Assembly (NCBI GenBank): GCA_965112735.1 | Contig: OZ218952.1 | Location: forward strand, 5,456,001-5,520,000 | Source of the DNA: Phaeosaccion multiseriatum | Lineage: Eukaryota > Protista > Ochrophyta, other classes | DNA length: 64,000 nucleotides | Reading direction: 5' to 3' | Shown: positions 5,265 through 53,116 of the stretch, in pieces | Layout: every line of letters starts with the position of its first letter | Numbering within the stretch: position 1 is the stretch's first letter | Translations under genes and position numbers: made by a program | The notes under the pieces: generated by a model | The model's database searches: none | The model's input: only the letters and a program-made list of their open reading frames with translations | Told to the model about the DNA's origin: nothing

Positions 5265-8200
5265 ATAATATGTATATGACACGTGTGCGTAACATTACGT
5301 ACCCTCATCCATAGAGGTGGAGGCCGTGAGCTCTTGCCAATCGCAGCCCTGTGCCCAGGACTCGACGATGCCGCTGAGAGTCGTGTCTTGTCGGATCGAC
5401 TGGTCCACGCCAGTTGTGAGCTGTGGAGGAGGGAGGGAGCGAGCGAGGGAGGGAGGGAGGGGAGGGAGGGAGGGAGGGGAGGGAGGGAGGGAGGGGAGGG
5501 GGTTGGGGGTGGAGACAAGTACGCGACTGAGAATGGCAGGCTCGCAGCAGCAGCAGCAGCAGCAGCAGTCGGTAGCAGTCGGTAGCATAGCAGCAACAGC
5601 GTCCACTTGGCCGCCGCACCACCGCCACCACCCACCAACTAACCACGCACCCCCAACCACACGTACCTGCTTCTCCAATAACTCTCCGGCCAAGTCGGCG
5701 AGCTCCAACGCGCAGTCCACCACCTCCTCCGAAGGGCCAAACTCCACAAACGTGTCCGAGCGCAGATATTCAAGCTGCAAGGCCGGGATAAAGGCCGCCA
5801 GCCCTACCGCCGTCATGCTCTTGAGGGTAGTGGATTGGGTGAGGAGGAGGGAGATCCAGAGCTCGTTGTCGTGGTTGACAGCACCCACGAGCTTGCCAAA
5901 GTCGGTGGGGGCGTTGTCCTCGTCCAGGGCGCCGTAGTGCCGGAGGACTCTGTGGTTGGGGTTGGTTGGTGGTGCGTGGTTGTTGTTTAGTTGTTTGGTT
6001 GTGGTTGTGGTTGTGGTTGTGGTTGATGTGGTTGGTTTTGACGCATTCATTGGGACGCTCACCCGGCGAAACCAGGCACTCACTCAATCACGCTCTCTCT
6101 AACTTCACTCACCCACTCACTCACTTACTCACTCACTCACTCACTCACTCACTCATTCCCTCACTCACTCACTCACTCACTCACGCCCTCACTCACTCAC
6201 TCACTCACTCACTCACTCTCTCACTCACTCCCTCACCCCCTCCCTCCCTCACTCACTCACTCACTCACTCACTCACTCACTCACTCACTCACTGACACCA
6301 GGCACTGACTCACTGACACTAGGCATTGACTGAAAGACCGACACGAGGCCATCCTCACTGACTTACTAACTCACTGACACCAGACACTCACTTGCACAGC
6401 GCGAGAAAGTCTTGCCACACCGGCTGCGCTCCGCTCCGTCCCCTCTCCGTCTTGCGCGCTTTGCGAACCTGATCCTCCAATTGCAGGACATCCTTAACGA
6501 GGGAGAGGGTGTCCGAGGCAGCGGCGGGGCTCGTGTGGAGGGGGTGCAGCTTCATTTGCTCCTGCACGCGGCCGATGACGGCGCGCTGTCGCATGATGTG
6601 GCCTTGATGTGGTTGGGTTGGGATGGTAGGATTGTTGGATGTTTTTGGGGTTGGTTGGGTTGGTTGGATGGTTGCTAGGTTGGTTGGATTGGTTGGATGG
6701 TTGGTTGTTTGTGCGCAACGGGGAGGGACTAGTACCTATCTCTTTATTGTACTGGGCAACCACGGTCTACTAATCTGAAACTCAAACCCAAACTCAGGAT
6801 CAAAACTCGAAGTCAAACTGCACACGTGCCCCTCACCTGGCGGCTCCAATGGTTCCATGAGCTTGATGTTGGCAGCAGCTTCTTCGAGGGGCACTGTGAC
6901 GGTGGAGCCCCACAGGGCCTTGTCGGCTTCAGTGGGGGCCAGCAGGGGGGTGCTCGTGCCGCGGGGCAGGGGGGTGTCTGCCTTAGGCCAAGGGGACTGG
7001 AGGGAGGAGGTGGAGGAGGAGGAGGAGGAGGAGGAGGCGGAGGAGGAGGAGGAGGAGGAGGAGGAGGAGGAAGAGGAGGAGGAGGAGGAGGAGGAGGAGG
7101 AGGAGGAGGAGGAGGAGGAGGAGGAGGAGGAGGAGGAGGAGGAGGAGGAGGAGGAGGAGGAGGAGGAGGAGGAGGAGGAGGAGGAGGAGGAGGGGGAGGA
7201 GGAGGAGATGAGCAGAAGCGCGTCTCATAACACACACACATCACTACCGAGGTGTGCGCCATTCCACTGCCATCCACGCCATGACCTACCGAGGGGTGGA
7301 CCATGGCGTTGAGCGCCACTGCAACCTCCGGGGACAGCCCTGCCGAGGGTTCTGTGTCTAGGCTTTCCACTTGCTCGGCACACACAGCAAGCACTTGGCC
7401 GCCGCTGGCGTTACAGAAGGATGTGGGTGGGGAATAGGGGGTGAAGGCGGGTTAGAGGGAGGGGGTTTGGGACAAGTGTGGGTTGGTGGGGGGGTAAGGC
7501 GGAGGAGAGGAGCGAGGGAGGGAGGGAGGGAGGAGGGAGAAGGAGAGAGGCAGCTAGAGACAAAGTGGAGAGGACGAGAGAGGGAGATGAACACAGAGGG
7601 AGGGAGAGAGCAAGCCACAGAGATAAGACAGACCACACAGAGACAGAGAGAGGACACAGACAGACAGAGAGAGACAGAGAGAGAGACAGACAAACAGATA
7701 AACAGATAAAAAAACAAGACAGACAGAGAGAGACACGAGTTGCCTGTACCTGGTGAGCACGATGACCCTCGCAGGCCCCCCGTCGAAGGCATCCTCATCC
7801 TCATCCTCCACATCGTAATCCCCGATCACAGCGCCGCTCTCTCCCGTGCGTAGCAGCACGCCTATACATGGCCCGACAGTGCAAGGGCAAAGGCGAGAGA
7901 AAGAGAGAGAGAGAGCAAAGGGGTGAGAAGGGACAAAGGACATCCGCTGCCCTCACTGAGAAGGGACAGAATGGAACGGGATGGGACAGGACATTTCGCT
8001 GTCCTCACCTGAGCCGAGTCGGCTCATGGGCAGCACTGTCTCGGTCACTTCAGTCTGCACTTCCGTATCCTGTGGGGGCATGAGGGAGGTATATGGGCAG
8101 ACAGACAGAGTGTGAGTGTGTGAGAGAGTGTGAGATGCGTCGACATGGCGAGTCGAGTACGTCGACATGTAGTGTCGAGGAAGTGCCGTACCTGGGCCAA

Positions 8201-11200: not shown

Positions 11201-14200
11201 GCCAAGTTACGCACAACGTACTGAAAGCTCGGCACATCCCTCTGCGCCACCATCCGAGTAGCCGACTCACTGTCACGGGGACCTCCACTCCTCCCCCTCC
11301 CATTCCTCCACCTCCCACCCCCACCCCCACCCCCACCACCACCACCACCCCAATCATCATAACGACCATTCCTGGAGTCACCTCTGTTGCGGTCTTTCCC
11401 TCCCCTATTTCGGCCCCTGTCCTTCCTCCCCCCTCCTCCTCCTCCTCCTCCTCCTCCCCCTCCTCTACCGTAGTTCCCAAGGCCGTTATTGCTGTTGCCG
11501 TTGAAGCGGTTTTGGTAGTCGAGACGGGCCTTCTCTTGCATAGCACGAGCTTTCGCTTGGAGGTCTTCGTGGTGAGCGAGCAGCTTTGGGTTGAGCTAAG
11601 AGAGAGGGGAAGGGGCGGGAGAGGAGGGGGTGATAGCAGCGATGAGACCACTTCCCTTTTGGACTATTGCACCACGGCATGCCTTACCCTGCCGCACGTG
11701 AAGCAGTGCCTCTCCCTCTGCCCCCATATGCCTGTGTTCCTGCCCATATGCCTGCCTAACGTACCCTGAGGCGATCTGGCAGCACCACCCTTCGCTTCCC
11801 CCTCTTCCTGCCCCTTCCCCTCTCTTTCTTCGTGTTCGCTCTCTCCTCCTGCACCACAGCGAGGTAGGCAAGGCACGGAAGAGCCAGAGGGAGTGAGTTG
11901 TGCGTATGTGTGTGTTGTGTGTGTATGTGTGTATGTGCATGTTGTGTGTGTATGTGTGTGTGTGCGTGTGTGTGTACGAGTGTGCATGTGTATTGTGAGC
12001 GTGTGTGTGTGTGTGTGCACACGTAACCCCTTACGTACCTTGGTTGGCCTGGCCCCGCGGAGCGCCCCTGGGCCTGAATCGGGGTCTTTAAAGAGATTAA
12101 ACAGGCCCCTGCTGTTGGCGTATAGGAAGCGCAGGGGCACGGGGCGGAAGTCCGACACAACAACCTCGCAGGGGCCGTGAGTGTGCTGGATCCAGCCCTG
12201 GGGGGGGGGAGAGGAAGGGAGGGAGGAAGGGAGGAATGGAGGAATGGAGGAGAGCAGGAGAGCGAGTGAGTAAGTGAGTGAGTGAGGGAGTGAGTGAGTG
12301 AGTGAGTGAGTGAGAGTGAGTGAGTTGAGTGGGTGAGTGAGTGAGTGAGTGAGTGAGTGAGTTGAGTGGGTGAGTGAGTGAGTGAGTGAGTGAGTAAGTG
12401 AGAGTGAGTGAGTTGAGTGGGTGAGTGAGTGAGTGAGCAAGCGACTCACTCCCCCCTCCTCCCCGACCGGAAAAGTGTGTCCGCATCCCCATGCGACTTG
12501 AATTTCTCACCCTTCACACCTCATCCTCTATCTACCCATCGACATTCTCAAGCCAAGCATCCCCTCCCACCCCACCCCATCCACTGCCATCCCCTTCTAT
12601 CCTATCCCGCCCCCTCCCATTCCATCCCATCCACTGCCATCCCTTCCCATCCACTGCCATCCCACCCACCCACTATCCCTCCCATACCCACACATCGACA
12701 CTCTTAAAGGCATCTCATTCCATCCCGTCTCATCTTACTCACTCCGATGTCCTTGGAGTTGGCCATGGTGGCGGACAGAGCGACCATCCCATCCACTGCC
12801 ATCCCACCCACCCACTATCCCTCCCATACCTACACATCCACACTCTTGAAAGCATCCCATTCCATCCCGTCTCATCTTACTCACTCCGATGTCCTTGGAG
12901 TTGGCCATGGTGGCGGACAGAGCGACCATCCCATCCACTGCCATCCCACCCACCCACTATCCCTCCCATACCTACACATCGACACTCTTAAAGGCATCTC
13001 ATTCCATCCCGTCTCATCATACTCACTCCGATGTCCTTGGAGTTGGCCATGGTGGCGGACAGAGCGACCATCCGCACGTGGTCAGGGCAGGAGATGACGG
13101 ACTCCTCCCACACGGTGCCTCTGTCTCTGTCGTTCATGTAGTGGAACTCGTCGAACACAACGGCAAACACGTCACGTAGCTCCTCCTCCCTGCAGGCATA
13201 TGGGCAGGGGTAGGCAGGTGTATGGGCAGGAATAAGGGTAGGCAGGTGTATGGGCAGGCATATAGGCAGGCATACGGGTAGGCAGGTGTATGGGCAGGTA
13301 TAAGGGCAGGCATATGGACAGGCATATGGGCAGGCATATGGGTAGGCATATGGGCAAGGCATATGGGCAAGGCATATGGGTAGGATGGTGTATGGGCAGG
13401 CAATTGTATGGGCAGAGGGGTATGGGCACAACCATATGAAGGTGTATGGGCAGGCATACTGGGCGGCGCATGGCAGGCAGGTGTATGGGACACAGGCAGA
13501 AGGAATGGACAGGCGTGTTTGGGTAGGTACAAAGGCAGGCGTATGAGGCACAGGCATACGGGCACAGACCCTGCCCCTTCCATCCACTGCCATCCCCCCC
13601 CTGACGTACCTTCCGTCATAGAGCATGTTCCGGAAGACCTCTGTGGTCATGACGCAAACATGGGCGTCCCTGTTGATGGTGAGGTCCCCTGTCAACAGCC
13701 CCACTCGATTTGGACCGAATTTGGCCTTGAAGTCAGCGAACTTTTGGTTGCTCAGCGCCTAAGAGAGAGGGAGAGAAGTGAGGGAGAGAGCAAGACGAGG
13801 GCGGGGGGGGGGGGGGGAGAGAGGGAGAGAGAGCAGTGAGTACGTACGCGAGTAGTGGGGATGGCTGCTTGGTTGCTTTTGTTTGTTCGCGGCGGCAGAC
13901 AATAGAAGCCCACGGCTAAAGAGATGCCCAAGGCTAGGAAGGTAAGGTCGCATGAAGCAAAGAAGACTCCACCCACCCACCCACGCACGCACGCACGCAA
14001 GGACAATCACGATACGTAACGCTATGGAAAAGGGACAATTCAATCAACGGGAAAGGGAAAGGTAAAAGGTTTCCAAGCTGGGGCTTCGCTTTACTTCGCT
14101 TGCCTTGAGCGGGGTGGTGTAGAACACACGCAGGCCCAGTGCGAGGGCGTAGTAAATAGCAAGCTCTCCTGCCACCGTCTTGCCGCTGCCCGTAGGGGCC

Positions 14201-15769
14201 GATACGAGGGCGTGCTTCTTCTGGGCAAGGGCACGGAGGGCCTGAAGGGGAGGGGGGGAGGTGAGTGCGTGGGTGGGTGGGTGGGTGGGTGGATGAGCAA
14301 GGAAGTGAGTGAGTTGAGTGAGTTGAGTAAGAAAGTAAGTGAGGCAGGACACCCCCACCCACAAACACACCTGCAGCTGGAAGTCGTCAAGAGGGAATTG
14401 AAAAAGCGATTGGAACAGCTCCGGCCTGAGCTCGCCCCCCGGCGCCATCTTTGCCACCTCTCTGAGCAGGTCCACAGCAGCAGGGGTGCCCACGGCCTCC
14501 CTCAGCTCCTGGAGCTTATCCTGCATGGCCTCAGGCAGATCTTTATCCCAGTCGTGCTTGAAAGAGCTGCTTGACGTTGCCCAGCCGTCGCCCTCGCCCC
14601 CCTCCTCCTCTTCCTCGTCCTCCTCCTCCTCGTCGTCATCCTCCTCCTCTTCCTCGCCACCCCTGATGGTTACGCCATCAATAATGTCCGAGATCCAATC
14701 ACTTTCCTCTCCTCCTCCTCCTCCTGTACTGCTGCTGCTACCCCCCTGCCGCCCCCCGCCCCCTGCCTTCCAGGTGTCCTTATCATCGGAGGAGAGGATG
14801 CGACTCAATATGTCATCTATGTCTTCCTCCTGCCCTCCTCCTTCTCCTCCTCCTCCTCCTACTCCTCCCCCTCCTTCGCCCCTCTTCCTTCGCGGTAGAG
14901 CACCGCTACCCTCATCCCCCCCCCCCCTCGCACCCCTCCCCGCCCCCGTCTGCTCGAGCAAGTCATCGCCCCGGAGGATGGCAGAGATGGCATCCTCGCT
15001 GTCATCGAGGTCCGTCAGGAAGCCGCTGCTGTCTCCGAAGATATCTCCGTCAGCAAGCAGCTCCGAGAGGGTGTCCTCCATGCTCTTGACGGGTTGGTTG
15101 TCTGAATCATCGACGTCGCTGTCGTCATTTTGACGACCCAGAAGAGGTCCTAGTGACTGTGTGGGTTTGGGTTTCGAACAACGAGGTGTATGGAAGAGGG
15201 GGGCAGCAGGAGGGGTGGGGCGGACAAGAGGTCTGAGAAAGGAGACACAGGGCTCGGTGATGGAAAACAAAATCTTCGCCTAGCCTTGCCCGCCCCCTTT
15301 CTCCTCCTCCGGCGTGTCTCCCCTCCGTCTCCCTCATTCCCATGAATACCGCAAATCTTCATACCAGCGCACACAGACTCACCCTCCCCCTTCCTTCCTT
15401 TCTATTTCTGTAGTTGTGGCTGCGGCATTCGATAGCACTCGCGCCCGTGCCGCACCCCACGCCGCCTGAATCTGCTCCACAGTTGGTCCAGCCTATCCGC
15501 GGGGCTTGGCTCTGCCGCTGCTGCCGTTGCTGCCGTTGCTGCTGCAGAGACTGGAATCCCTGCCTACTGCATGCAGAAAGTAACTGAAAGCCTGTCGTGA
15601 ACGCACAGCCTGTAAGGAACACCAATGCCGTCTGGCGTGGCGACGAAAAAGTAGGAGGGCCGCGGCAAGGCCCACCGGCTCGCCCGCTTCTCCCTTCCTC
15701 CCATGGACGCAGTACACGTTTCTGAGGCTTGCCTCCCTTCCCCCCTTCGCTGCTCCCCGCCTCTTTCAT
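4425..15769 (-). CDS. Ski2/Mtr4/HelY-family DExH-box RNA helicase with DSHCT domain (ISE2/DExH15-like, probably plastid-targeted), about 20-25 exons
   Basis: Motifs in order on the minus strand: APTGSGKT, YTTPLKALSNQKFADF, GLLTGD, MTTEVFRNMLY, DEFHYMND, ALSATMAN, RPVPL, PAIVFIFSR, GIATHHAG, FATETLAAGVNMPARTT, QMAGRAGRRGMD, then a DSHCT-like region ending LLDRYPV and an acidic tail to the stop at 4425. The start codon (15769) is uncertain. Confidence 0.9.
7002..7207. repeat. (GAG)n intronic microsatellite, one of many simple repeats in the window ((TCAC)n, (GACT)n, (CA)n, (CT)n)
   Basis: Directly visible inside a helicase intron. It explains the poly-E, poly-G and poly-P ORFs in the track. 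Confidence 0.95.
12646..13071. repeat. Three tandem ~142-bp copies of a helicase exon 3' end plus its donor site and flanking intron
   Basis: CACTCCGATGTCCTTGGAGTTGGCCATGGTGGCGGACAGAGCGACCATCC starts at 12740, 12882 and 13024. Only the last copy continues into the DEFH exon. Confidence 0.92.
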
Positions 15770-20490: not shown

Positions 20491-22580
20491 TTATATATAT
20501 TACACCCTTAAGTGCCATCTATGGTTGTCTAAAAGTAATGTCTCACCGCCCCGGGGAACTTAGCCCTCGAGGTCGTGTCCCTCTTCGGCTCCAGACTGGC
20601 CTAGAAGCCTATGCTCTAGGCCCTAGGCCGAGCGGCCTACGCCCGCTCTAGGCCTAGGCCGGCGGCCGTTGGCCGCTCTAGGCCGGCCATTTTTTCTCCC
20701 TAGGCCGGCGGTTCTAGGCCTAGGCCTCGACCTATCTGATTAGTAATTACCGCCGGCGCAGCCGGCCTGATTACTGATTATGACCGGCGCCAGCCGGCCT
20801 GAGTACTGATTATGCGCCAGCCGGGGGCTGATTACTGATTACGGCCGGCGCACACCGTAATCTTGTCCAGGGTCGAAGGGAGGGAGGGAGGGAGGGAGGG
20901 AGGGAGGGAGGGAGGGAGGGAGGGAGGGAGGGAGGGAGGGAGGGAGGGAGGGAGGGAGGGAGGGAGGGAGGGAGGGAGGGAGGGAGGGAGGGAGGGAGGG
21001 AGGGAGGGAGGGAGGGAGGGAGGGAGGGAGGGAGGGAGGGAGGGAGGGAGGGAGGGAGGGAGGGAGGGAGGGAGGGAGGGAGGGAGGGAGGGAGGGAGGG
21101 AGGGAGGGAGGGAGGGAGGGAGGGAGGGAGGGAGGGAGGGAGGGAGGGAGGGAGGGAGGGAGGGAGGGAGGGAGGGAGGGAGGGAGGGAGGGAGGGAGGG
21201 AGGGAGGGAGGGAGGGAGGGAGGGAGGGAGGGAGGGAGGGAGGGAGGGAGGGAGGGAGGGAGGGAGGGAGGGAGGGAGGGAGGGAGGGAGGGAGGGAGGG
21301 AGGGAGGGAGGGAGGGAGGGAGGGAGGGAGGGAGGGAGGGAGGGAGGGAGGGAGGGAGGGAGGGAGGGAGGGAGGGAGGGAGGGAGGGAGGGAGGGAGGG
21401 AGGGAGGGAGGGAGGGAGGGAGGGAGGGAGGGAGGGAGGGAGGGAGGGAGGGAGGGAGGGAGGGAGGGAGGGAGGGAGGGAGGGAGGGAGGGAGGGAGGG
21501 AGGGAGGGAGGGAGGGAGGGAGGGAGGGAGGGAGGGAGGGAGGGAGGGAGGGAGGGAGGGAGGGAGGGAGGGAGGGAGGGAGGGAGGGAGGGAGGGAGGG
21601 AGGGAGGGAGGGAGGGAGGGAGGGAGGGAGGGAGGGAGGGAGGGAGGGAGGGAGGGAGGGAGGGAGGGAGGGAGGGAGGGAGGGAGAGAGGGAGGGAGGG
21701 AGGGAGGGAGGGAGGGAGGGAGGGAGGGAGGGAGGGAGGGAGCAGCCGGCCTGATTACTGATTAGGACCGGCGCCAGCCGGTCTGGTTGCTTACAGCCGG
21801 TGACCAGCCGGCCTGATTACTGATTTTGCGCCGGCCGGGGGCTGATTACCGGTTACGGCCGGCGCACACCGTAATCTTGTCCAGGTCCTAGGCCGGGAGG
21901 GCTGCGCCCAAAATAGGCCTAGGCCGGGGACCTGCGGCCCCCTCTAGGCCTAGGCCGGGGGCCTGCGGCCCCCCTAGGCCGGCCGAATTTCGTCTCTAGG
22001 CCTAGGCTTCTAGGCCAGTCTGGAGCCGACCCTCTGACTCATCAGTTCTCCCCATTGGAACAAAGTTGATACCAGCCAGGATCCTGTGTCGAACCGATCG
22101 TTCGTGTCGGGCCCGCTGGAGCGCTACGGCTAATCGTCGCCGAATGACGAAAACAGCTCTCGCATAAGCCCTCGTGTCCAGATGTTCGTGCCCCCCAGCC
22201 ATGTGGGTGGCGAGTGTTTTCATAAACATCTGAGCAGAAGGACCAAATGCGCCTTGCTGTTCCATTGCGAAAGGGACGAGGTGGTACCGCGTGGGGTCAT
22301 AGTGGATGTCCCCACCCTGGCCTTCCATGCCTACCTGTGGCACCCCATACCTGGTCCGCTTGGTGGCTTCAGCCTTCTTGGCTGCCGCGAGTGTCTCCTT
22401 CGATGCCTTGGCCCGGTTGGTGGTGTTGGTGGCATCTGTGAGCGTGACGTCGATCATGAGGGACTTGTGGCCGTCGCCATATTCATGATCGGACGGAAGC
22501 TCAAACATCCTGGGGGGAGTCACGATGTCCATCTCCATCTGCTTGGCCACGTGGGCGTCACTCCTCACGGCGTTGCTCCC
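20491..22580 (-). mobile_element. 5'-truncated CRE-like non-LTR retrotransposon (RLE region plus 3' UTR), interrupted by a MITE
   Basis: The ORF contains MDIV, LMIDVT, KKAEATKRTRY, LVPFAMEQQGAFG and RRRLAVALQR. The 3' tail is GGGTGTAATATATA. 11-bp TSD CGAGGGGAAGA at 20480-20490 and 22581-22591. Confidence 0.82.
20585..22029. mobile_element. Second copy of the TCGG-TIR element, with an ~860-bp (AGGG)n tract
   Basis: Same TIRs as 1004-1990. TSD CCCTCT at 20579-20584 and 22030-22035. The empty site GTGTCCCTCTGACTCATC is visible at ~55734. Confidence 0.92.
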
Positions 22581-22840: not shown

Positions 22841-25800
22841 ATGTCTAGCGTCCTCGACGAGCAGCGTAGAATACTCACAGCCATCTTTCATGCCACGAGC
22901 GGACCCGCTTGGTCTATCACTGCAGGATGGAACACGGAAGCACCATTGGAGACCTGGTTCAGAGTGAGCGTAGAGAAAGAGAATGGCTATGTGGTGAAGC
23001 TCGACCTGAAAAGGAACGGCCTCAAAGGTGAGAGAGGTGTGATTATGGTTGTTGCGCCTTAAGGTCCTGAAGAGTTTTCTAAAGTCTTGAAGGTTCGAAA
23101 AGGTCGCTCTTTGTTCATGCAACAACATGTGATGGGTCTAGAATATTCGGGAAGGACGAAGTAAAGGGGGGCAAGAATGAGGCAGCGGCATGACGTGGTA
23201 GTCCAGCGACCCGTTCGCGTCCCTTTCACTTGATATAAGTATGGCTGAAGAACTTTCCTCCGCTCCGCAGGGAGCATTCCGCCGCAACTTGGACAGCTTT
23301 CAAGCCTTCAAGAACTACGGCTCGACGAGAACAATCTAGGTAGGTGGTACGCACACCCGTTCGCGTCCTATTCGCTTGATAGTCGAATGACAAAGAACTT
23401 TCCTCCGCTCGGCAGGGAGCATTCCGCCCGAGCTTGGAAGTCTTGAGAACCTGACGGTGCTCAGCCTGTGGGGCAACAAGCTCACTGGTAAGTGGTACGC
23501 ACACCCGTTCGCGTCCCTTTGGCTTGATAGTCGTGTGACAAGGAAAATCCCTCCGCTCCGCAGGGAGCATTCCACCCGAGCTTGGAAGTCTGGAGAAGCT
23601 TGAGAAATTGAACCTCTTCAAGAACAAGCTCACTGGTAAGTGGTACGCACACCCGTTCGCGTCCCTTTCACTTGATTTTAGTATGGCTGAAGAACTTTCC
23701 TCCGCTCCGCAGGGAACATTCCGCCCGAGCTTGGAGGTCTGCAGAACCTTCAGGGTCTGGACCTCTCCAGCAACAAGCTCACTGGTGAGTGGTACGCACA
23801 CCCGTTCGCGTCCTCTTGACTTGATATTATGACAAAGAACTTCCCTCCGCTCCGCAGGGAGTATTCCAAGTGAGCTTGAAAGTCTGAAGGAGCTCAGCCG
23901 CTTCAGCTTCTCCAACAACAAGCTCACTGGTGAGTCATACGCGCGCGTCCCCTTGACTTGATATGAGTATGACCAAAGAACTCTCCTCCCATCCGCAGGG
24001 AGCATTCCAAGGGAACTTGGAGGTCTGGAGAAGCTTGAATATTTGAGCCTCTTCCACAACAAGCTCACTGGTAGGTGGTACGCGCACCCGTTCGCGTCCC
24101 TTTCACTTGATATGAGTATGACCAAAGAACCCCTTCCTCCCATCCACAGGGAGCATTCCACCAGAGCTTGGAGGTCTCGTCCAGCTCACCTCTCTGTTCC
24201 TCCACAACAACCAGCTCTCCGGTGAGTGGTACACACACCCGTTCGCGTCGCGTCCCTTTGACTTGATGTAAGTATGACCAAGACCATTCCTCCGCTCCGC
24301 AGGGAATATTCCGCCCGAGCTTGGAAGTCTTGAGAACCTTACGGGACTCAGACTGTGGGGAAACAAGCTCACTGGTAAGTGGTACGCACACCCGTTCGCG
24401 TCCCTTTCACTTGATATGAGTATGACCAAAAGAACTCTCCCCCATCCGCAGGGAGCATTCCGCCCGAGCTTGGAGGTCTGGAGAAGCTTGAGAATTTGGA
24501 CCTCAACGGCAATGAGCTCACTGGTGAGTGGTACGCACACCCGTTCGCGTCCTCTTGACTTGATATAAGTATGGCTGAAGAACTCTCCTCCGCTCCGCAG
24601 GGAACATTCCGCCCGAGCTTAGAAGTCTTGAGAACCTAACGGTACTCAGCCTCGGCAACAACCAGCTATCCGGTGAGTGGTACGCGCGCCCGTTCGCGTC
24701 CCTTTGACTTGATATGAGTATAACCAAAAACTTTCCTCTGCTCCGCAGGGAACATTCCGCCCGAGCTTGGAAGTCTCGGGAACCTGACGGCGCTCAACCT
24801 GCGGGACAACCAGCTCATCGGTAAGTGGTACGCGAACCCGTTCGCGTCCCTTTGACTTGATATAGGTATGGCTAAAGAACTTTCCCCTCATCTCTCAGGG
24901 ACTATTCCGCCGCAACTCGGAAAGCTTTCAAACCTTCGAGGACTTTATCTCCACAGGAACAATCTAGAAGGTAGGTGGTATGCACACCCGTTCGCGTCCC
25001 TTTCGCTTGATAGTCGTGTGACAAAGAACTTCCCTCCGCTCCGCAGGGAGCATTCCATGGGAGCTTGGAAGTCTGAAGAGGCTTCAGCATTTCGACCTCT
25101 CCAACAACAAGCTCACTGGTAAGTGGTACGCACACCCGTTCGCGTCCCCTTGACTTGATATTAGTATGGCTGAAGAACTTTCCCCACATCTCAGGGAGTA
25201 TTCCTTGGCAACTTGGACAGCTTTCGAACCTTCGAAAACTTTGGCTCAACCAGAACAATCTAGAAGGTATGTGGTACGCTTACCCATTCGCGTCCCTTCG
25301 ACTTGCTATGAGTATGACCAAAGAACTTTCCTCCCATCCGAAGGGAGCATTCCAAGGGAGCTTGGAAGTCTGGAGAGACTTGTGCATGTGGACCTCTCCT
25401 CCAACAAGCTCACTGGTAAGTGGGACGCGTACCCGTTCGTGTCCCTTTCACTTGATACTTGGGTAGGGAACATGGCGAGATTTTCGATGAGCCAAATTCT
25501 GAGTGGTCCGGCTCCATGGCGACGTTCAGCTTGACCCACTGCTGCATTTCAAGACTCGCCACGCATCCTCCGCCGTGCCGTTCTACCTTGTCGCATCCCT
25601 GCCTGCAGGCTTTGCAACGGGCACGAATGAAGATTGGATACTCAGATTTTGCGAGGGGATCAACTTTCAGGGGGAAGATAACCCGCCCCAGTACCACTTT
25701 CAGGTGCAAGATAACCCGCTGCAGTACCCGCCACTTGGGGTGCTGCTGCAAGGACGGCACATGACGCAAAAGTACTTCGATGACTTGCGGAAGTGTTCAA

Positions 25801-28800
25801 AAGAAGTAAGGAGCCTCAAGGTCATGCTCTTAGGACCCACAACTGTGGGCAAGACCAGGTACGATAATGCCCTCTTCATCACTTTGTCCTGTCTAGCTAA
25901 GTGCGATGGGCGACAGAGGAGTTCGAGGGCAGGAGAGAGGAGGGGAGAACTGCTAAGATACACACGTCTCGTTGTCCCCGCTGCTCTTGATTAGCTTCCA
26001 ACATGCCCCCCCCCCCCCCCCAACGTTTCGTCCTTGTGTAGTTTGATGCGTAGCATCAAGGTAGGGCGGCCCACAGCAACGGTGGAAGGGGAGAACCCGT
26101 CGACGGTCGGTGTTGACGTCGATGGCTGCGAGCTCAAGACGTCGGAGGGTTCGGTTGTGTCGTGTCGCTTCTTCGACTGTGGTGGTCAGCAAGACTATCA
26201 CGGCCTGAGCAGCATGTTTATGACAGAAGGAGCTGCCTACCTGCTGGTTTGGAGTCCGCCGGACGATCCAAATGGCGCTGAGCTTGAACCGTTCTTTCAA
26301 ATGCTCAAGCACGGCGCTTCGAAGTCCACTGCGCTCGGTGTAGCCAACAAATGCGACCAGTGGAAGGGGGCTCAGAGCGATTTGACGGCACGCTGTACGT
26401 CATTTCACAGTCTTGTGAAGAAGGAGCTGCGGGAGGGGCGCATAGCGTTGGGGGGGAAAATACACATGACGAGCTGCAAGGAGGAGGACGGAGGGCGGGA
26501 GGAGGAGCTAAGGGTGTTGATGGAGACGTTAACGGGCCTAGGCCAGACGTACGTAGTGGGTTCCTTGCTCAAGAAAGCAGTGGCCCTTCTGGACCGCATG
26601 GCGAAGGGGCACATCTTTCTGACAATGGGTGAAGTGGAAGAAGCGTGGAAGGTGGAGTTGCAGAAGGACGGAGACGAAGACGAGGACAAGGAGCTTGCGG
26701 ATGTGATGCTCCAGTGCGGAGTCAATATGCTGTAAGTACGGAGGGCCTTTGGGGCGAGTTTGTGCGGAATTGAGCGAGCCTATTAGCTGGGTATGGTCCA
26801 GATTCCCAAGGTTGTTGGCGTGGCTGAATACTGTGTCGGAACAGAAGGCCGTTTTGTATTGAGCCCGAGGCGAGAGGGAACGTAAGCACCTGTGGGGGGC
26901 AGGGGTAGCTAGATCACTTTCCCGCCGTGCCCCTCTCATTGCATCTCTCGGTGGGCGTGCAGGGACAGGAACGGAAGACTCGTGGTGGCTGGAGGCGTGG
27001 AGAAAGGTGCAGCCATTGTTCTTTCAGAGGCGGTCTTGTTTTCCAAGTTGATCAGTCCGCTCCTGACTCCGGCCGATGCCATCACTTCCGACGGTGAAGA
27101 AGTGCTTCTCGGTCGCAACGAGGTGTGTGTGAGATGGCAAAGAAAGATAGGAAGGGTTAGAACTTGGCCAGAGTGTACTGATGTTGTGTCGTCCGTCTGA
27201 TGCCCCCCCCCTTGTCCACACTTTTCTCTTCGCTTGCCTCCACCTGCCGTATCCTCGGTATTGGTTTTTGTGTGCCCCCCACGGAAGGGACCTTTCACGC
27301 CACCCGCACTGAAGCCACTGAAGCCGAAGCGACAAGTGGACGACGGCGACGATGGACTTAAACTTGACAGGTGTGGTGCCAACCAACTCAAGGATGGGGT
27401 GCTGACGGTTGGGTTTGCCAGATCGGTGTGGAACGCTGTTCTTCTTCGTGAGGGGGGGGACGGGGGAAGGACTTTCGACGAACAACAAGAAAAGGCTTTG
27501 CTGGGAAGGTTGGTGGACCTGGGCATCATTTTTGAGAAGGCTCAGCACGACAATGCCCCGGGAGGGGTCAATGGTGGTGGCAATCCTGCCGAGGGGCAAG
27601 AGCTCCAATTCGTGATCTCCCTCCGCATGCCAGATGCGATGGACAGCTCGAATGAGCGAGCGCAGGAATTGAGAGAAGCGGCAGATGATATCAGTTTGAA
27701 GATGAAGGATTGGGAATGCTTGAAGCAGGTCTACCTCCAGCTGGAGCGCCCCCCTTCCCCCGGGACCATTGCCAGGCTGGTGTCTACTCTCTCCACCAAG
27801 GGACTCGGTGAGGTGGCGGTTGGCTGGAGGCAAGGGGCGTTGTTCGTCGCCGCCCAAGAGGCGTACATGGCATTTGTCAGCTATGACTGGACGAAACAAC
27901 GCTTGTACCTGAAGGTGGCTGGTCTGTGGGAAGAAGGGGAGAAGCAGGTGAGGAAGAGGAAGGGGGGTCATATACGTGGCCTGATGTACTCACCACCGCG
28001 TCGCACTTACTCTGACTCTTGCAAGTTGTGTTTCTACACTTTTTTTTTTTGCGCTTCATCAACAATGCAACAAAGTGCGACTCTTTCCCGACCGTTGCGA
28101 TGGGCTTGTTGCTCCGACACACGGTCCACCACCTCTCCTCCTACAAGTGCCGGTGGAAGGCCGTGTACGTGGTCAAGGACATGAGCATGAAAGAAAAGTG
28201 GGAGCCACTCTGTGAGGTAAGAGAGAGTGTGTGCACTATGCTTGTGGTATGGTCGAGGCTTCTCTCGTGCCAGAGAAGTGTTGCTCTCAGCTTTGGTGCG
28301 GCTGACAGATATCATAACCTGTGTGCTTTGGACGGAAACAGGGAAACCTTCAGGAACTCGGATGTGTGCTGGATAGGTCGAGGGAAGCTGAGGCAGGCAC
28401 AAACGAGCAGCGCCGGCTGTCGGAACAGGATGTCGAGGGGCTGATCGCTACACCCGTCCCGAACCCCCGCTGGGCGCCGCCGGCCCTGGCCATGGGTCGC
28501 TTTGGAGACGAGTGGAAGACAGTGCGCGACAAGTTTGAAGGGGAGGCTTTCGGTACACTACGGACTTGTGTGAACACGTTCACGAAAAACCAGGTACAAG
28601 GCTGCTGCGAGCGAAGAGTAGGCCCAAGAGTAGGCCTGTGTTGACGACTTTGCTCTCCGAAACCTGTGTTCTGATGCTGATTTCCTTTTGTCCCTCTCTT
28701 CTCTCGAAGGGATACCTGCGGAAGGCGCGAGAGGAGCTTCTCAAAGACGGCGAAAGTCTTGTAATGAAGGACGATACGGATTACCAAGTCTTCCTGAGCC

Positions 28801-29501
28801 ACGCCGGGACGGAGAAGCGGGGCATTGTGTCTCTGCTGCACAGATGTCTGTGGCAGAGAGGAATTCCGACTTTCTTGGACGAGAAAAGCCTAAAGCCAGG
28901 AGACCGCGCCGAGCACAAGATGCTCCACGTTGCCCGCACCGCCCCGATTGGCGTGGTCGTGCTGAGTCCGTCTTTTGTGTGCCGAGAGTGGCCTCTTCAG
29001 GAGATGCAAATCTTCATGGACAGGGCGAGGAAGGGGGAAGCAACGCTGGTGCCGTTATTCTTCGGGCTGACGGTTGAGGAATGCTGGAACCCGCAGCTAC
29101 TACAAAAGAACCATCCTGACGTGAAGGATACGTGGGGCGAATGGAGCGAAGGGGAGGGAGGGGTTTGGCGTTGGCTGAAGGCGCAGAGATGGGCAGGATC
29201 GGTTTGGAGTTGGCTTACGGGGCAAAGAGGGGCAGGACCGGGTTGGAGTTGGCTTAAGGGGCAGAGACGGGACGAGCTTGCGAAAGACCTGCTGGGGAGT
29301 GTGGGTACGCACACGGGTCTCCGCGACGACCAGAAAGAAGATCTGTTTGCTTTCGCCAAAAGAGTGGCCAACAAGGTGGAAAGGGCATTGACGACGTTTC
29401 ATTCCAAGTCCGAGAAAAGAAAGTTCGAAGGGTTGGAGGGGGGTTCCACGCTGACATGCACGTGTGATGGGGGGGGGGGGGGGGCAGAAGCCCGGACGTG
29501 A
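22841..29501 (+). CDS. LRR-ROC-COR-TIR (ROCO family) protein, paralog 1; N-cap plus 15 LRR exons
   Basis: N-cap exon 22841-23027 and LRR exons 23271-25415. Roc motifs GPTTVGKTS, STVGV, FFDCGGQ, VANKCD and TSCK (exons 25609-25858, 26042-26731). COR-like exons to 28593. TIR exon from 28710 with VFLSHAG, TFLDEKSL, VVVLSPSF, WPLQE and LVPLFF. Confidence 0.88.
23271..25415 (+). repeat. LRR exon/intron cassette array 1 (15 exons; first 69 bp, others 72 bp; ~149-bp period)
   Basis: Exon starts: 23271, 23416, 23564, 23713, 23858, 23999, 24150, 24303, 24452, 24601, 24749, 24899, 25047, 25195, 25344. All are phase 1 and fit GxIPxxLGxLxxLxxLxLxxNxL. Confidence 0.95.
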
Positions 29502-34934: not shown

Positions 34935-37900
34935 ATGTCTAGCGTCCTCGACGAGCAGCGTAGCATACTCACAACCATCTTTCACGCCACGAGCGGACCC
35001 GCTTGGTTTGACACTGCAGGATGGAACACGGAAGCACCATTGGAGACCTGGTTGGGAGTGGGCGTAGAGAATGGCTATGTGGTGAAGCTCAGCCTGTTTT
35101 TCAATGGCCTCAAAGGTGAGAGAGATGTGATTATGGTTGTTGCGCCTTGTGTCCTGAAGAGTTTTCTAAAGTCTTGAAGGTTCGAAAAGGTCGCTCTTTG
35201 TTCATGCAACAACATGTAATGGGTCTAGCATATTCGGGAAGGACGAAGTAAAGGGGGGCAAGAATGAGGCAGCGGCATGACCTGGTAGTCCAGCGATCTG
35301 TTCGCGTCCCCTTGACTTGACTTGATATTAGTATGGCGAACAACTTTCCCCACATCTCAGGGAGTATTCCGCCGCAATTTGGAGAGCTTTCGAACCTTCG
35401 AGAACTTTGGCTCCCCAAGAACAGTCTAGAAGGTAGGCGGTACGCACACCCGTTCGCGTCCCCTTGACTTGATATGAGTATGACCAAAGAACTTTCCACC
35501 CATCCGCAGGGAGTATTCCACCCGAGCTTGGATGTCTTGAGAAGCTTCAGTATTTGGTCCTCCAGAGCAACACTCTAGAAGGTAGGAGGTACGCGTACCC
35601 GTTCGCGTACCCGTTCGCGTCCCCTTGACTTGATATGAGTATGACCAAAGAACTTTCCTCCCATCCGCAGGGAGCATTCCACCCGTGCTTGGAGGTCTTC
35701 AGAACCTTGCGTTTCTGTCCCTCCGCGGCAACAAGCTCACCGGTGAGTGGTACACACACCCGTTCGCGTCCTCTTGACTTGATATTAGTATGACCAAAGA
35801 ACTTTCCCCCGCTCCATAGGGAGCATTCCAGCTGAGCTTGGAGGTCTGGAGAAGCTTCAGCAGCTGGTCCTCCACAACAACACTCTAGAAGGTAGGTGGC
35901 ACGCGAACCCGCTCGCGTCCCTTTCGCTTGAAAGTCGTATGACAAAGAACTTCCCTCCGCTCCGCAGGGAGCATTCCAAGGGAGCTTGGAAGTCTGGAGA
36001 AGCTTGAGTATTTGAACCTCTCCCGCAACGAGCTCACTGGTAAGTGGTACGCGTACCCGTTCGCGTCCCCTTGACTTGATATTTGTATGGCTGAAGAACT
36101 TTCCCCACATCTCAGGGAACATTCCGCCGCAACTAGGACAGCTTTCGAACCTTCGAGAACTTTGGCTCAACCGGAACCGTCTAGAAGGTAAGTGGTACGC
36201 ACACCCGTTCGCGTCCCTTTCGCTTGATATGAGTATAACCAAAGAACTTTCCTCCCATCCGAAGGGAGCATTCCAAGGGAGCTTGGAAGTCTGGAGAAGC
36301 TTGAGCAGTTGGACCTCTCCGACAACAAGCTCACTGGTAAGTGGCACGCACACCCGTTCGCGTCCCTTTCGCTTGATAGTAGCGTGACCAAAGAGCTCTC
36401 CTTCCATCCACAGGGAACCTTCCCAAGGAGTTGGGGAAGCTTTCAAACCTTCGAGAACTAGGGCTCTCGGGGAACAATCTAGAAGGTGAGTGGTACATTT
36501 TCCCCTTTCGCGTCCTCTTGACTTGATGTTTAGTATGGCTGAAGAACTTTCCTCCCATCCGCAGGGAGGATTCCGCCGCAACTTGGACAGCTTTCAAACC
36601 TTCAATACCTACGGCTCGATAAAAACAATCTAGAAGGTAGGTGGTACGCACACCCGTTCGCGTCCCTTTGACTTGATATCAGTATGACCAGAGAACCTTC
36701 CTCCGCTTCGCAGGGAACATTCCACCAGAGCTTGGGCGTCTGCAGAACCTGGCCGTGCTCAACCTTGGCAAAAACCAGCTCACTGGTAAGTGGTACGCAC
36801 ACCCGTTCGCGTCCCTTTGACTTGGTGTAAGTATGACCAAAGAACTTTCCTCCGCTCCGCAGGGAAGATTCCGCCCCAGCTTGGAAGTCTGGAGAAGCTT
36901 GAGGTTTTGAGCCTCTCTGGCAACAGGCTCACTGGTAGGTGGTACGCGAAACCGTTCGCGTCCCTTTGACTTGATATTAGTATGGCTGAAGAACTTTCCC
37001 CACATATCAGGGAGCATTCCGCCGCAGCTTTCGCAGCTTTCAAACCTTCGAGGACTTCGGCTCAACCGGAACAGTCTAGAAGGTAGGTACGCACACCCAT
37101 TCGCGTCCCTTCGACTTGCTATGAGTATGACCAAAGAATTTTCCTCCCATCCGAAGGGAGCATTCCAAGGGAGCTTGGACAGCTTTCGCACCTTCGAGAA
37201 CTTAAGCTCCACCAGAACAGTCTAGAAGGTAGGTGGTACGCACACCCATTCGCGTCCCTTCGACTTGCTATGAGTATGACCAAAGAATTTTCCTCCCATC
37301 CGAAGGGAGCATTCCAAGGGAGCTTGGAAGTCTGGAGAAGCTTAAGTCTGTGGACCTCTCCTCCAACAAGCTCGCTGGTAAGTGGGACGCGTACCCGTTC
37401 GCGTCCCTTTCATTTGATACTAGAGTAAGGAACATGGCGAGATTTTCGATGAGCCAAATTGTGAGTGGTCCGGCTCCATGGCGACGTACAGCTTGACCCA
37501 CTGCTGCCTTTCAAGACTCGCCACGCATCCTCCGCCGTGCCGTTCTACCTTGTCGCATCCCTGCCTGCAGGCTTTGCAACGGGCACGAATGAAGATTCGA
37601 TACTCAGATTTTGCAATGGGATCCTCTTTAGGGTGGAAGACAACCCGCTTCAGTACCCGCCAGTTGGGGTGCTGCTGCAAGGACGGCACATGACGCAAAA
37701 GTACTTCGATGACTTGCGGAAGTGTTCAAAAGAAGTAAGGAGCCTCAAGGCCATGCTCTTAGGGCCCACAACAGTAGGCAAGACCAGGTACGATATGCCC
37801 TCTTCGTCACTTTGTCCTGTCTAGCTATGTGCGATGGGCGACAGAGGAGTTCGAGGGCAGGAGAGAGGAGGGGAGAACTACTAAGATACACGCGTCTCGT

Positions 37901-40900
37901 TGTCCCCGCTGCTCTTGATTAGCTTCCGACATGCCTCCCCCCCCCCCGACGTTTCGTCCTTGTGTAGTTTGATGCGTAGCATCATAGCAAGGCGGCCCAC
38001 AGCAACGGTGGAAGGGGAGAACCCGTCGACGGTCGGTGTTCACGTCGAGGGCTGCGAGCTCAAGACGTCGGAGGGTTCGGTTGTATCGTGTCGCTTCTTC
38101 GACTGTGGTGGTCAGCAAGACTATCACGGCCTGAGCAGCATGTTTATGACAGAAGGAGCTGCCTACCTGCTGGTTTGGAGTCCGCCCGACGATCCAAATG
38201 GCGCTGAGCTTGAACCGTTCTTTGAAATGCTCAAGCACGGCGCTTCGAAGTCCACTGCGCTCGGTGTAGCCAATAAATGCGACCAGTGGAAGGGGGCTCA
38301 GAGCGATTTGACGGCACGCTGTACGTCATTTCACAGTGTTGTGAAGAAGGAGCTGCGGGAGGGGCGCATAGCGTTGGGGGAAAAAATACACATGACGAGC
38401 TGCAAGGAGGACGGAGGGCGGGAGGAGGAGCTAAGGGTGTTGATGGAGGCGCTAACGGACCTAGGCCAGACGTACGTAGTGGGTCCCTTGCTCGAGAAAG
38501 CAGTGGCCCTTCTGGACCGCATGGCGAAGGGGCACATCTTTCTGACAATGGGTGAAGTGGAAGAAGCGTGGAAGGTGGAGTTGCAGAAGGACGGAGACGA
38601 AGACGAGGACAAGGAGCTTGCGGATGTGATGCTCCAGTGCGGAGTCAATATGCTGTAAGTACGGAGGGCCTTTGGGGCGAGTTTGTGCGGAATTGAGCGA
38701 GCCTATTAGCTGGGTATGGTCCAGATTCCCAAGGTTGTTGGCGTGGCTGAATACGGTTCGGACCAGCAAGGGCCGTTTTGTATTGAGTCCGAGGCAAGAG
38801 GGAACGTAAGCACCCGTGGGGGGCGGGGGTAGCTAGATCACTTTCCCGCCGTGCCCCTCTCATTGCATCTCTCGGTGGGCGTGCAGGGACAGGAACGGAA
38901 GACTCGTGGTGGCTGGAGGCGTGGAGAAAGGTGCAGCCATTGTTCTTTCAGAGGCGGCTTTGTTTTCCAAGTTGATCAGTCCGCTCCTGACTCCGGCCGA
39001 TGCCATCACTTCCGACGGTGAAGAAGTGCTTCTCGGCCGCAACGAGGTGTGTGTGAGATGGCAAAGAAAGATAGGAAGGGTTAGAACTTGGCCAGAGTTT
39101 ACTGATGTTGTGTCGTCCGTCTGACATGCCTCCCCCCTTGTCCACACTTTTCTCTTTGCTTGCCTCCACCTGCCGTATCCTCGGTATTGCTTTTTGTGTG
39201 CCCCCCACGGAAGGGACCTTTCACACCATCCGAACTGAAGCCACTGAAGCCGAAGCGACAAGTGGACGACGACGATGGACTTAAACTTGACAGGTGTGGT
39301 GCCAACCAACTCAAAGATGAGGTGCTGACGGTTGGCTTTGCCAGATCGGTGTGGAACGCCGTTCTTCTTCGTGAGGGGGGGGGCGGGGGAAGGACTTTCG
39401 ACGAACAACAAGAAAAGGCTCTGCTGGGAAGGTTGGTGGACCTGGGCATCATTTTTGAGAAGGCTGAGCACGACAATGACTCGGGAGGGGTCATTGGTGG
39501 TGGCAATCCTACCAAGGGGCAAGAGCTCCAATTCGTGGTCTCCCTCCGCATGCCAGATGCGATGGACAGCTCGAACAAGCAAGCGCAGGCATTGAGAGAA
39601 GCGGCGGATGCGATCAGTGAGAAGATGAAGGAAGGGGAATACTTGAAGCAGGTGTACCTCCAGCTGGAGCGCCCCCCTTCCCCCGGGACCATTGCCAGGC
39701 TGGTGTCTACTCTTTCCACCAAGGGACTCGGTGAGGTGGCGGTGGGCTGGAGGCAAGGGGCGTTGTTCGTCGATGCACAACAGGCGTACATGGCCTTTGT
39801 CAGCTATGACTGGAAAAAAGAACGGTTGTACCTGAAGGTGGCTGGCCAATGGGAAGAAGGAGAGGCGCAGGTGAGGAAGAGGGAGGGGGGTCACATGCGG
39901 GGACTGATGTACTCACCACCGGGTCGCACTTATTCTGACTCTTGCAAGTTGTGTTTCTCCACTTTTTCTGTTTTGCGCTTCATCAACAATGCAACAAAGT
40001 GCGACTTTTTCCCGACCGTTGCGATGGGCTTGTTGCTCCGGCACACAGTCCACCATCTCTCCTCCTACAAGTGCCGGTGGAAGGCCGTGTACGTTGTGAA
40101 GGACATGAAAGAAGAGTGGGGGCCACTCTGTGAGGTAAGAGAGAGTGTGTGCGCTGTGCTTGTGGTATAGTCGAGGCTTCTCTCGTGCCAGAGAAGCGTT
40201 GCTATCAGCTTGCGTGTGGCTGACAGATATCATAACCTTTGTGTTGTGGGACGGAAACAGGGAGACCTTCAGGAACTCGGGTGTGTGCTGGATAGCAGGT
40301 CGAGGAAAGCTGAGGCAGGCACAAACGAGCAGCGCCGGCTGTCGGAACAGGATGTCGAGGGGCTGATCGCTACACCCGTCCCGAGCCCCCGCTGGGCGCC
40401 GCCGACCCTGGCCTTGGATCACTTTGGAGACAAGTGGAAGAGGGTCTGCGAGGATTTTAAAAAGGAGGCTTTCGGTACACTACGGACTTGCGTGGAAATG
40501 TTCACGAAAAACCAGGTACGAGGCTGCTGGGAGCTAAAAGTAGACCTGTGTGACGACTTGTGCTCTCCAAAACCTGTGTTCTGACGCCGAATTCCTTTTG
40601 TCCCTCTCTTCTCTCGAAGGGATACCTGCGGAAGGCGCGAGAGGAGCTTCTCAAAGACGGCGAAAGTCTTGTAATGAAGGACGACACGGAGTACCAAGTC
40701 TTCCTGAGCCACGCTGGGACGGAGAAGCGGGGCATTGTGTCTCTGCTGCACAGATGTCTGTGGCAGAGAGGAATTCCGACTTTCTTGGATGAGACAAGTT
40801 TGCGCGCAGGAGACCGCGCGGAGGACAAGATGCTCAAGGTGGCTGACACCGCCCCGATTGGCGTGGTCGTGCTGAGTCCGTCTTTTGTGCGCCGAGAGTG

Positions 40901-41270
40901 GCCTCTTCAGGAGATGCAAATCTTCATGGAAAGGGCGGAGAAGGAGAAAGCAGTGTTGGTGCCGTTATTCTTCGGACTGACGGTTGAGGAATGCTGGGAC
41001 ACGGGCAAATTAGAAGACAACCATCCTGACGTGAAGAAGACATGGGGAGACTGGAGCGAAGGGGAGGGAGGGGTTTGGGGTTGGCTTGAGCAGGGGAAGA
41101 CAGCAGACAAGCTTGCGAAAGACCTGCTGGGGGGTGTGGGTACGCACACGGGTCTCCGCGACGACCAGAAAGAAGATCTGTTTGCTTTCGCCAAAAGAGT
41201 GGCCAACAAGGTGGAAAGGGCATTGACGACGTTTCATTCCAAGTCCGAGAAAAGAAAGTTCGAAGGGTAG
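34935..41270 (+). CDS. LRR-ROC-COR-TIR protein, paralog 2; N-cap plus 14 LRR exons
   Basis: Same exon structure as paralog 1. Roc motifs and the TIR (WPLQE) are intact. Stop at 41270. Confidence 0.88.
35361..37377 (+). repeat. LRR cassette array 2 (14 x 72-bp exons)
   Basis: Exon starts: 35361, 35510, 35671, 35820, 35968, 36116, 36265, 36414, 36565, 36714, 36863, 37011, 37157, 37306. Confidence 0.95.
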
Positions 41271-52337: not shown

Positions 52338-53116
52338 CGGGTACCGTAGCACAAGAATGAACTTGTATATAAATGTATTGTGTAGTGGAAGGAAGATCCA
52401 GAAACGTGACGGCCAGCCAGAGCCGCCAGCCTTCGGGCCTACGTGCTTCCACGCCGGGCCTTCTCAGGTGGTGGCCTTGTTTTTGGACTCTGCTTGCCTC
52501 TTGTCTGTCTCTCTCGTTCGCTCGCTCGCTCGCTCCTCCACGCTCCTTTGGTGTAACTTTGGTGTGCGTTGGTGTGCCTCACGCTTGACTTGTGTGGTGA
52601 GCCGTCAAGGACCCTCCACTTCACATACACGTGTTGTACTAAAATAAAACGGAGGGGAGTCCTTGTCATGTTGCAAGTTGCTGGGATGTGAGTGAGGCAA
52701 CGTCTTAGCACCTTAGGAATCACATTGCGGGGTCCGGCCTCACTCTCCGCTCTAGTCGTACAAATTAATCCATAAACTATAATTGAATTGACAGATGGTA
52801 TTAAAAAAAAATGGTATTACACAAAAGGAGAGCTTGCTTGGGTTGTGCTCAAACACATAAGACCATGCAACAAGTATACCCCTCCCCCTTACCCTACAAA
52901 CCCTGGCCCAGACAGGGTAACCGCCCCCCCCCTCGGTCTTTCCCACTTGGGCCTCTAAGAACCCATTTTTTGCTTACATGGGGCTCTCAGGGTACCCATT
53001 GTTTGCTTACCTGGGCCTCAGGGTATCTAGTGTTTGCCTACTTCGACCTCATTTGGGCCCCAGGTACCCATTACCCATTGTTCGCTTACTTGGGCCTGAG
53101 GGTGCCCATTATGTGT

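Follow-up and report, generated by a model that had tools for sequence, protein, structure and literature searches.

A near-invariant intron core as candidate homology anchor for exchange of leucine-rich-repeat cassettes in Phaeosaccion multiseriatum

Evaluating a 64-kb window of the Phaeosaccion multiseriatum genome (contig OZ218952.1; "window" denotes the whole stretch analyzed, and coordinates are window positions), we found that four tandem paralogous genes encoding leucine-rich repeats (LRRs), a Roc GTPase and TIR domains carry a near-invariant 24-base core in almost every intron between their LRR exons. Conservation forms a gradient that peaks at this motif, linkage along the repeat unit breaks within it, the paralogues are mosaics, and its dyad symmetry is weak and unprotected by compensatory change. 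We interpret the motif as a homology core where LRR cassettes exchange and their introns are homogenised while the exons diversify, a reading to which we assign a probability of roughly 0.55. From these observations we infer that the uniformity is produced by exchange and that no further function need be invoked.

The four genes lie on the + strand at a spacing of ~11–12 kb and share a layout in which an N-terminal exon is followed by an array of one-LRR exons and then by a Roc GTPase exon (PF08477, 4/4 genes), with a C-terminal TIR exon recognized by Pfam in genes 1, 2 and 4 (for protein-domain evidence, exons were searched singly rather than as an assembled spliced protein). The arrays are built of tandem 148–149-base units, each comprising a 72-base exon that encodes one 24-residue repeat and a 76–77-base intron. 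All 49 canonical LRR exons are 72 bases long and open in frame, and their consensus is GxxPxxLxxxxxLxxLxLxxNxLx, with conserved P4, L7, G8, L10, L13, L18 and L23. Intron phase is identical across the LRR arrays, such that every exon closes on the initial G of a glycine codon and the next opens with GG, and because of this uniform G/GG joint cassettes can be gained or lost in frame. The arrays are as follows:

23209–25459, + strand: LRR cassette array of gene 1, with 15 motif-type introns; the first intron's partial motif marks its start and the canonical stretch of the last intron its end
35300–37423, + strand: LRR cassette array of gene 2
45912–48464, + strand: LRR cassette array of gene 3, including two 144-base double-LRR exons
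57868–58830, + strand: LRR cassette array of gene 4, short, a mosaic of segments nearest genes 2 and 3

The motif comprises the donor GTAAGT and then the 24-base core (intron +6 to +30), as in this copy:

24821–24850, + strand: donor GTAAGT plus 24-base core in its perfect 8-2-8 palindrome form (fold −11.5 kcal/mol)

Searching with the 30-mer GTRRGTGGTACGCRNACCCGTTCGCGTCCC at up to 3 mismatches returned 45 matches, all on the + strand, versus 0 in 100 shuffles, and a looser search with a 23-base core returned 50 + strand copies, all within the four LRR arrays (about 23.2–25.5, 35.3–37.4, 45.9–48.5 and 57.9–58.8 kb); matches to the core on the minus strand were the identical sites read as palindromes. 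Intact motifs follow 47 of the 51 LRR-intron donors and broken versions the other 4, all of them from four close paralogues and therefore not independent, which bears out a first-pass annotation of this DNA that had placed the motif in almost every inter-LRR intron. That annotation had also seen no copy in the Roc, COR or TIR introns and had described the motif as bracketing every cassette. Both points held: we found no 23-base core outside the four arrays anywhere in the 64 kb, including the other introns of the same genes, and in 4/4 genes a partial copy lies in the first intron (23209–23223, 35300–35311, 45912–45922, 57868–57882) and a full copy follows the last LRR exon (25416, 37378, 48423, 58787). 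The array repeats begin inside the first-intron motif and stop ~13 bases past the last-intron motif. As read from the consensus, GC content is 71% in the motif, which has 4 CpG, and about 41% in the remaining intron; a near-invariant CTTGAT at about +36 is the likely branch site. The 144-base exons of gene 3 (46565–46708 and 47984–48127) encode irregular double LRRs and are both flanked by the motif, and the introns preceding them depart from the canonical form in their 3' half.

To compare the motif with its surroundings, we calculated mean pairwise identity over an alignment of 38 complete canonical units. The 24-base core reached 0.923 (median 0.974), the remaining intron 0.784 and the LRR exon 0.611, with values of 0.513 at third codon positions and 0.583 at the four-fold sites of conserved residues. 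The core exceeded the remaining intron (Mann-Whitney p = 1.5e-4) and was the most conserved 24-base window in the whole 148-base unit, so that the earlier claim of a motif better conserved than the adjacent coding sequence stands with a clear excess. Uniformity is thus higher across the entire LRR intron than at silent coding sites and highest in the motif, a gradient (0.92 > 0.78 > 0.58) that favors homogenisation by exchange.

The variable positions of the unit locate the boundary between cassettes. Donor positions +3 and +4 were linked with the upstream exon (z = 3.4 and 6.5) and the intron from about +34 to the acceptor was linked with the downstream exon (z up to 9.8), whereas two variable sites within the motif were linked to neither. 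Pairs of variable sites 25–48 bases apart that span the motif had a mean z of about −0.04 to −0.28, compared with about 2.3–2.4 for equally spaced pairs elsewhere and 1.9 for pairs spanning the acceptor. Over the comparisons made, mean z ranged from −0.3 to 0.1 for motif-spanning pairs and from 1.7 to 2.4 for the others. This linkage break narrows the cassette boundary to the invariant 24-base core. The ends of blocks with at least 93% identity between paralogues gather in the same region, with 12 of 21 falling at intron −1 to +32, an interval that makes up 23% of the unit (binomial p = 7e-4). The array of gene 4 is mosaic, its segments being nearest, in order, to gene 2, gene 3, gene 2, gene 2, a ~100-base unassigned stretch and gene 3, and its first three switches (58010–58035, 58154–58167 and a (TA)11 site at 58313/58336) all lie in the donor-plus-motif interval, junctions of this kind being mappable only to sequence common to both parents. 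The linkage pattern, the block ends and the array edges together imply that the re-assorting module is the 3' half of an intron plus an exon plus the next donor, and that modules meet in the motif; these comparisons support the motif interval as a place of past cassette exchange. Some blocks have mid-exon ends, at about −50 relative to the donor of an LRR exon (37069–37179 versus 37215–37328; 36323–36435 versus 47747–47859), and such ends fit chimeric exons and a second exchange point.

The first-pass annotation had drawn attention to a dyad, two inverted 8-base arms around an 8-base spacer. The symmetry is present, but it is imperfect in most copies: only 6 of 51 are perfect dyads, five of them 8-2-8 and one 8-8-8. 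The perfect arms reported at 37384–37407 are indeed there, as the sole 8-8-8 copy, and the perfect palindromes reported at 24830, 46500 and 46718 are joined by two more at 47163 and 47469. When an 11-pair dyad was laid on 40 copies, 76.5% of cells were paired, and 3 of the 11 pairs were unpaired in the majority (31, 20 and 29 of 34 distinct rows), the conserved 5' arm being the mismatched GGTAC and not GGGAC. The compensatory changes that the annotation had proposed looking for did not appear, with 0 of 11 dyad pairs altered on both sides and shuffled data giving equal figures. By these measures the dyad is weak. Its symmetry can also be parsed as two tandem 12-mers, GTACGCGTACCC then GTTCGCGTCCCY, each with a palindromic ACGCGT-like core, which agree at 9–10 of 12 positions in the GT variant and at 7 of 12 in the majority form; a palindromic core that is repeated directly inevitably gives the appearance of a dyad. 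The most invariant part of the motif is the 3' core TCGCGTCC, which survives in diverged variants.

As RNA, the usual form of the motif pairs as two 6-base helices with a mismatch (median fold −6.3 kcal/mol), and stable folds are confined to the rare perfect copies. Taken in isolation the motif has a better fold than the bulk of its shuffles (5 of 200 do as well), and whole introns fold no better than theirs (z = +0.2 and +0.9). An RNAalifold consensus was weak (−7.4 kcal/mol), also paired the donor with ACUUG at +35 to +39, and showed no covariation, and an Rfam scan of array 1 returned no match at E <= 1. A likeness to tRNA or Pol III boxes, seen by eye, was rejected on the grounds that the stems are unpaired, the boxes lie too close together and Rfam reports no tRNA.

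Copies that depart from the usual form, together with the sole perfect 8-8-8 copy, are listed here:

37384–37407, + strand: sole perfect 8-8-8 copy, last intron of gene 2 (−16.7 kcal/mol, z = −3.6)
35582–35624, + strand: motif in which an internal duplication of 12 bases makes three tandem 12-mers (orthologous copy 58477–58519)
24222–24256, + strand: motif whose 3' arm contains a duplication of the 5 bases CGCGT (same change at 47154, 47307 and 47460)
23930–23952, + strand: LRR intron in which the motif centre (the ACCCGTT part) is lost
36486–36515, + strand: LRR intron whose motif has diverged at its centre and retains only GGTAC and TCGCGTCC (orthologue 58155–58184)
58316–58337, + strand: (TA)11 insertion in the motif 5' arm, at the junction of two gene-2-like segments

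The altered cassette at 36486 and 58155 is common to two paralogues, within a shared block that is 98% identical. Given the 5- and 12-base duplications, the central deletion and the (TA)11 insertion, spacing within the motif is not fixed and altered cassettes are kept.

We then turned to other sequence sets for relatives of the motif and of the genes that carry it. With the Roc exon as query, a word-index protein search gave no match, and an exhaustive protein search gave distant relatives only (best E 3e-9, 25–49% identity), the most LRR-rich of which was Nemacystus decipiens protein P0035. Related algal loci L025/L026 and L027 have Roc exons 42–49% identical to the query and, upstream of these, LRR exons that are likewise 72 bases long and share the intron phase; the motif is wholly absent from their long introns (about 0.6–1.3 kb). 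Cassettes of L025 form a mosaic pattern in which the intron flanks are 87–88% alike versus 75–78% for the exons, a likeness that reflects block duplications. Introns more alike than exons are thus a phenomenon common to these species, and the motif sequence is not, such that the related locus shows the same process with a different sequence, a point in favor of the exchange reading. A Copia-type reverse transcriptase fragment (RVT_2) lies between LRR exons of the ROCO-like locus L025 (1820–2869, minus strand). Set aside as comparisons were locus L024, a Roc gene without an LRR array, and loci L028–L030, which have no LRR exons. Scanning for the core (19 specified bases in the metagenome search) returned 17 metagenome loci, each a single isolated match and none tandem, and 6 single matches in viral contigs; being isolated copies without tandem repeats, these were read as chance and not as the true motif.

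We propose that the motif would be the invariant, GC- and CpG-rich core of an intron that is duplicated along with each LRR exon, and that modules would join their neighbors within the motif interval. When misaligned cassettes undergo unequal crossing-over or gene conversion, the event would resolve in the motif as the longest shared stretch, and this exchange would keep the motif uniform by concerted evolution, perhaps aided by GC-biased conversion, while the exons diverge quickly. The motif would then act as a homology anchor for the evolutionary shuffling of cassettes and not as the target of a dedicated enzyme. Passive homogenisation had been named in the first-pass annotation as one alternative to a recombination signal, and it is the alternative that fits best.

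Several points weigh against this proposal. Homogenisation alone leaves the excess of the motif over the rest of the intron unexplained unless exchange concentrates there, which makes the argument partly circular, and an identical stretch of 15–24 bases is short for classical homologous recombination. Six or seven of the 21 block ends fall inside exons, so the motif is not the sole exchange point, and the annotation's suggestion that crossovers be mapped against the motif thus meets a mixed result, with clustering in the motif interval and about a third of the ends in exons. The 51 copies come from the four paralogues noted above and do not count as independent observations. Purifying selection on a splicing or binding element predicts an equal pattern of conservation.

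Such selection is the substance of the alternative that survives best, one we consider unlikely as a full explanation: the motif would be an intronic splicing element, bound by a factor or forming a donor-adjacent hairpin, that ensures accurate intron definition among near-identical 77-base introns. Its position is in line with this, as the stretch between the donor and the likely branch site is ordinarily the least constrained part of an intron and is here the best conserved, and so is the folding of the isolated motif against shuffles. The introns are also spliced. Contigs assembled from sequencing run X5 have GT..AG joints and continue from exon to exon exactly at donors 23785, 24071 and 25267, from which it follows that LRR introns of this kind are removed; sequencing-run evidence of this type consists of assembled contigs placed at 90% likeness, among which thousands of short paralogue contigs matched, and with many paralogues matching at that level apparent joints in DNA are unreadable as rearrangements of the locus. 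However, the pairs of the dyad show no compensatory change, whole introns fold like their shuffles, the motif's median fold is only −6.3 kcal/mol and array 1 matches no Rfam family. The other introns of the same genes do without the motif, cassettes with a broken motif persist in two paralogues (36486 and 58155), and related algae use the same exon design without it. As an addition to homogenisation by exchange and not a replacement for it, a constraint imposed by splicing may act on the motif too.

A dedicated recombination signal, at which a specific enzyme would exchange or delete cassettes in the germline or the soma, was the first-pass annotation's leading suggestion and appears very unlikely. 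The loss of linkage and the concentration of block ends do coincide with the motif, which brackets each cassette and both ends of every array and is absent from the window's non-LRR introns, and (TA)11 filler sits exactly at one junction within it. Against this, the dyad that was to define a recombinase-type target is imperfect in 45 of 51 copies with the mismatched state as the conserved one, spacer and arm lengths vary through indels, and among the window's 27 large open reading frames (ORFs) Pfam recognized domains of Roc and TIR, of a Ski2-type helicase (DEAD, DSHCT) and of an adaptor small chain but none of a recombinase or transposase. Neither a CACAGTG nor a CACTGTG heptamer, as expected of a V(D)J-type signal, occurs in any of the four arrays; the motif is missing from related algae that share the cassette design; and a third of block ends lie within exons. 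Plain homology accounts equally for all of the positive evidence, and because homology-driven exchange resolves in the longest identical stretch, the breakpoint pattern fails to separate a signal from homology as such.

Less probable again is a self-complementary RNA tag, with motif copies in different introns pairing to loop out the cassettes between them for regulated skipping. Skipping would keep the frame, as all LRR introns share one phase, and LRR exons of Ectocarpus ROCO genes are reported to be alternatively spliced (PMC11378527). A single X5 contig has a GT..AG joint from 24971 to 25194, which matches one skipped cassette in size, but the joint may stem from a paralogue given the 90% likeness and the many paralogues matched, and the two mismatched 6-base helices of the usual form and the lack of covariation speak against pairing. 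A DNA site for a sequence-specific protein, in which GTACGCGTACCC and GTTCGCGTCCCY would bind a dimeric factor within the gene, is similarly hard to credit, for although the two 12-mers agree well in the GT variant, come in a three-copy version (35582 and 58477) and include the most invariant part of the motif in TCGCGTCC, the majority form has only 7 of 12 positions in agreement, there is no known factor and the window holds no copies outside introns.

We know of no exchange point defined to date for the LRR-ROCO cassettes of brown algae, and the new elements here are the loss of linkage across the motif, the gathering of block ends at it, its indel variants and its absence from two related algal loci. 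If the motif is a homology anchor only, it provides a neat example of concerted evolution holding an intron to greater uniformity than silent coding sites. In the improbable event that it is instead a cis signal of programmed cassette exchange, with a dedicated enzyme cutting or pairing at it and possibly acting somatically, this alga would possess a rearranging immune-receptor repertoire, as perhaps would brown algae with other signals; brown-algal LRR-ROCO proteins were proposed in 2012 to be receptors diversified by exon shuffling (PMC3341825). Under either outcome, a 24-base core in a 77-base intron offers a concrete target for tests of rearrangement and splicing and for crossover mapping.

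Beyond the arrays, the Roc and TIR exons of the four genes were placed by Pfam as follows:

26034–26735, + strand: Roc GTPase exon of gene 1 (PF08477, E about 5e-9)
37900–38658, 48983–49711 and 59164–60102: Roc matches in the other genes (PF08477)
28566–29501, + strand: TIR exon of gene 1 (PF01582/PF13676, E 1e-13 to 6e-16)
40560–41270 and 61930–62724: TIR matches in other genes (PF01582/PF13676)

Unlike genes 1, 2 and 4, gene 3 gave no TIR match among the ORFs tested (52811–53524 and nearby), and its TIR exon may be split or lost. No COR match was obtained from Pfam in the exons after Roc, InterProScan being reported as blind to brown-algal COR (PMC11378527). In gene 1, the intron that directly precedes the Roc exon contains a run of ~16 C (26007–26022). 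Two antisense ORFs, 311 and 344 residues long (23226–24161 and 35547–36581, minus strand), span six to seven cassette units and are probably a by-product of repeat composition. Directly upstream of gene 1 is an (AGGG)n microsatellite (20877–21742, ~216 copies, 99% purity), with other long simple repeats at 1345–1698 (CTCC)n and 7003–7207 (GGA)n, and minus-strand exons of a Ski2/Mtr4-type RNA helicase (DEAD, DSHCT; 5295–6083, 12988–13704, 14044–15270) lie upstream of the receptor cluster.

Among known systems, the motif is like lox and FRT sites in having inverted arms around an asymmetric 8-base spacer, a likeness limited to a few perfect copies, and unlike them in that its arms are 8 and not 13 bases long and mostly mismatched, its spacing varies and no recombinase gene was seen in the window. 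Dscam docking and selector elements are conserved intronic elements repeated at every alternative exon, as is the motif; in Dscam one docking site is complementary to many selectors, which covariation supports, whereas all copies of the motif are one sequence and show no covariation. Assembly of lamprey variable lymphocyte receptors (VLRs) is somatic and deaminase-dependent and copies from flanking donor cassettes. It resembles the present arrays in that LRR cassettes are joined via short shared end sequences, and differs in that nothing in the present arrays points to somatic change. Fungal NLR repeats are highly conserved, undergo unequal crossing-over and contain hypervariable positions; as here, recombination keeps a uniform framework while binding positions diversify, but the fungal framework is coding and lies within one exon, and here it is an intron between exons. 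PMC10197012 and PMC13449251 give background on these fungal repeats (WD40/ANK/TPR).

Brown-algal ROCO genes with type I LRR exon cassettes have been described by Zambounis et al. 2012 (PMC3341825) and Teng et al. 2024 (PMC11378527), and term searches of the text of both papers returned no mention of a conserved intron motif, palindrome or hairpin. The introns studied here differ from those of brown-algal ROCO genes in being far shorter (76–77 bases) and near-identical, and the genes end in TIR, whereas no Ectocarpus LRR protein carries TIR according to PMC3341825. Other features are shared. As in the type I exons of Ectocarpus ROCO genes, each 72-base exon encodes one 24-residue LRR (GxIPxxL...LxLxxNxL), and as in brown-algal ROCO genes generally, intron phase is uniform, tandem paralogues have recombined LRR arrays and a Roc GTPase follows downstream. 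Signs of cassette shuffling between paralogues are likewise present, as in LRR-ROCO genes, with gene 4 composed of gene-2-like and gene-3-like segments.

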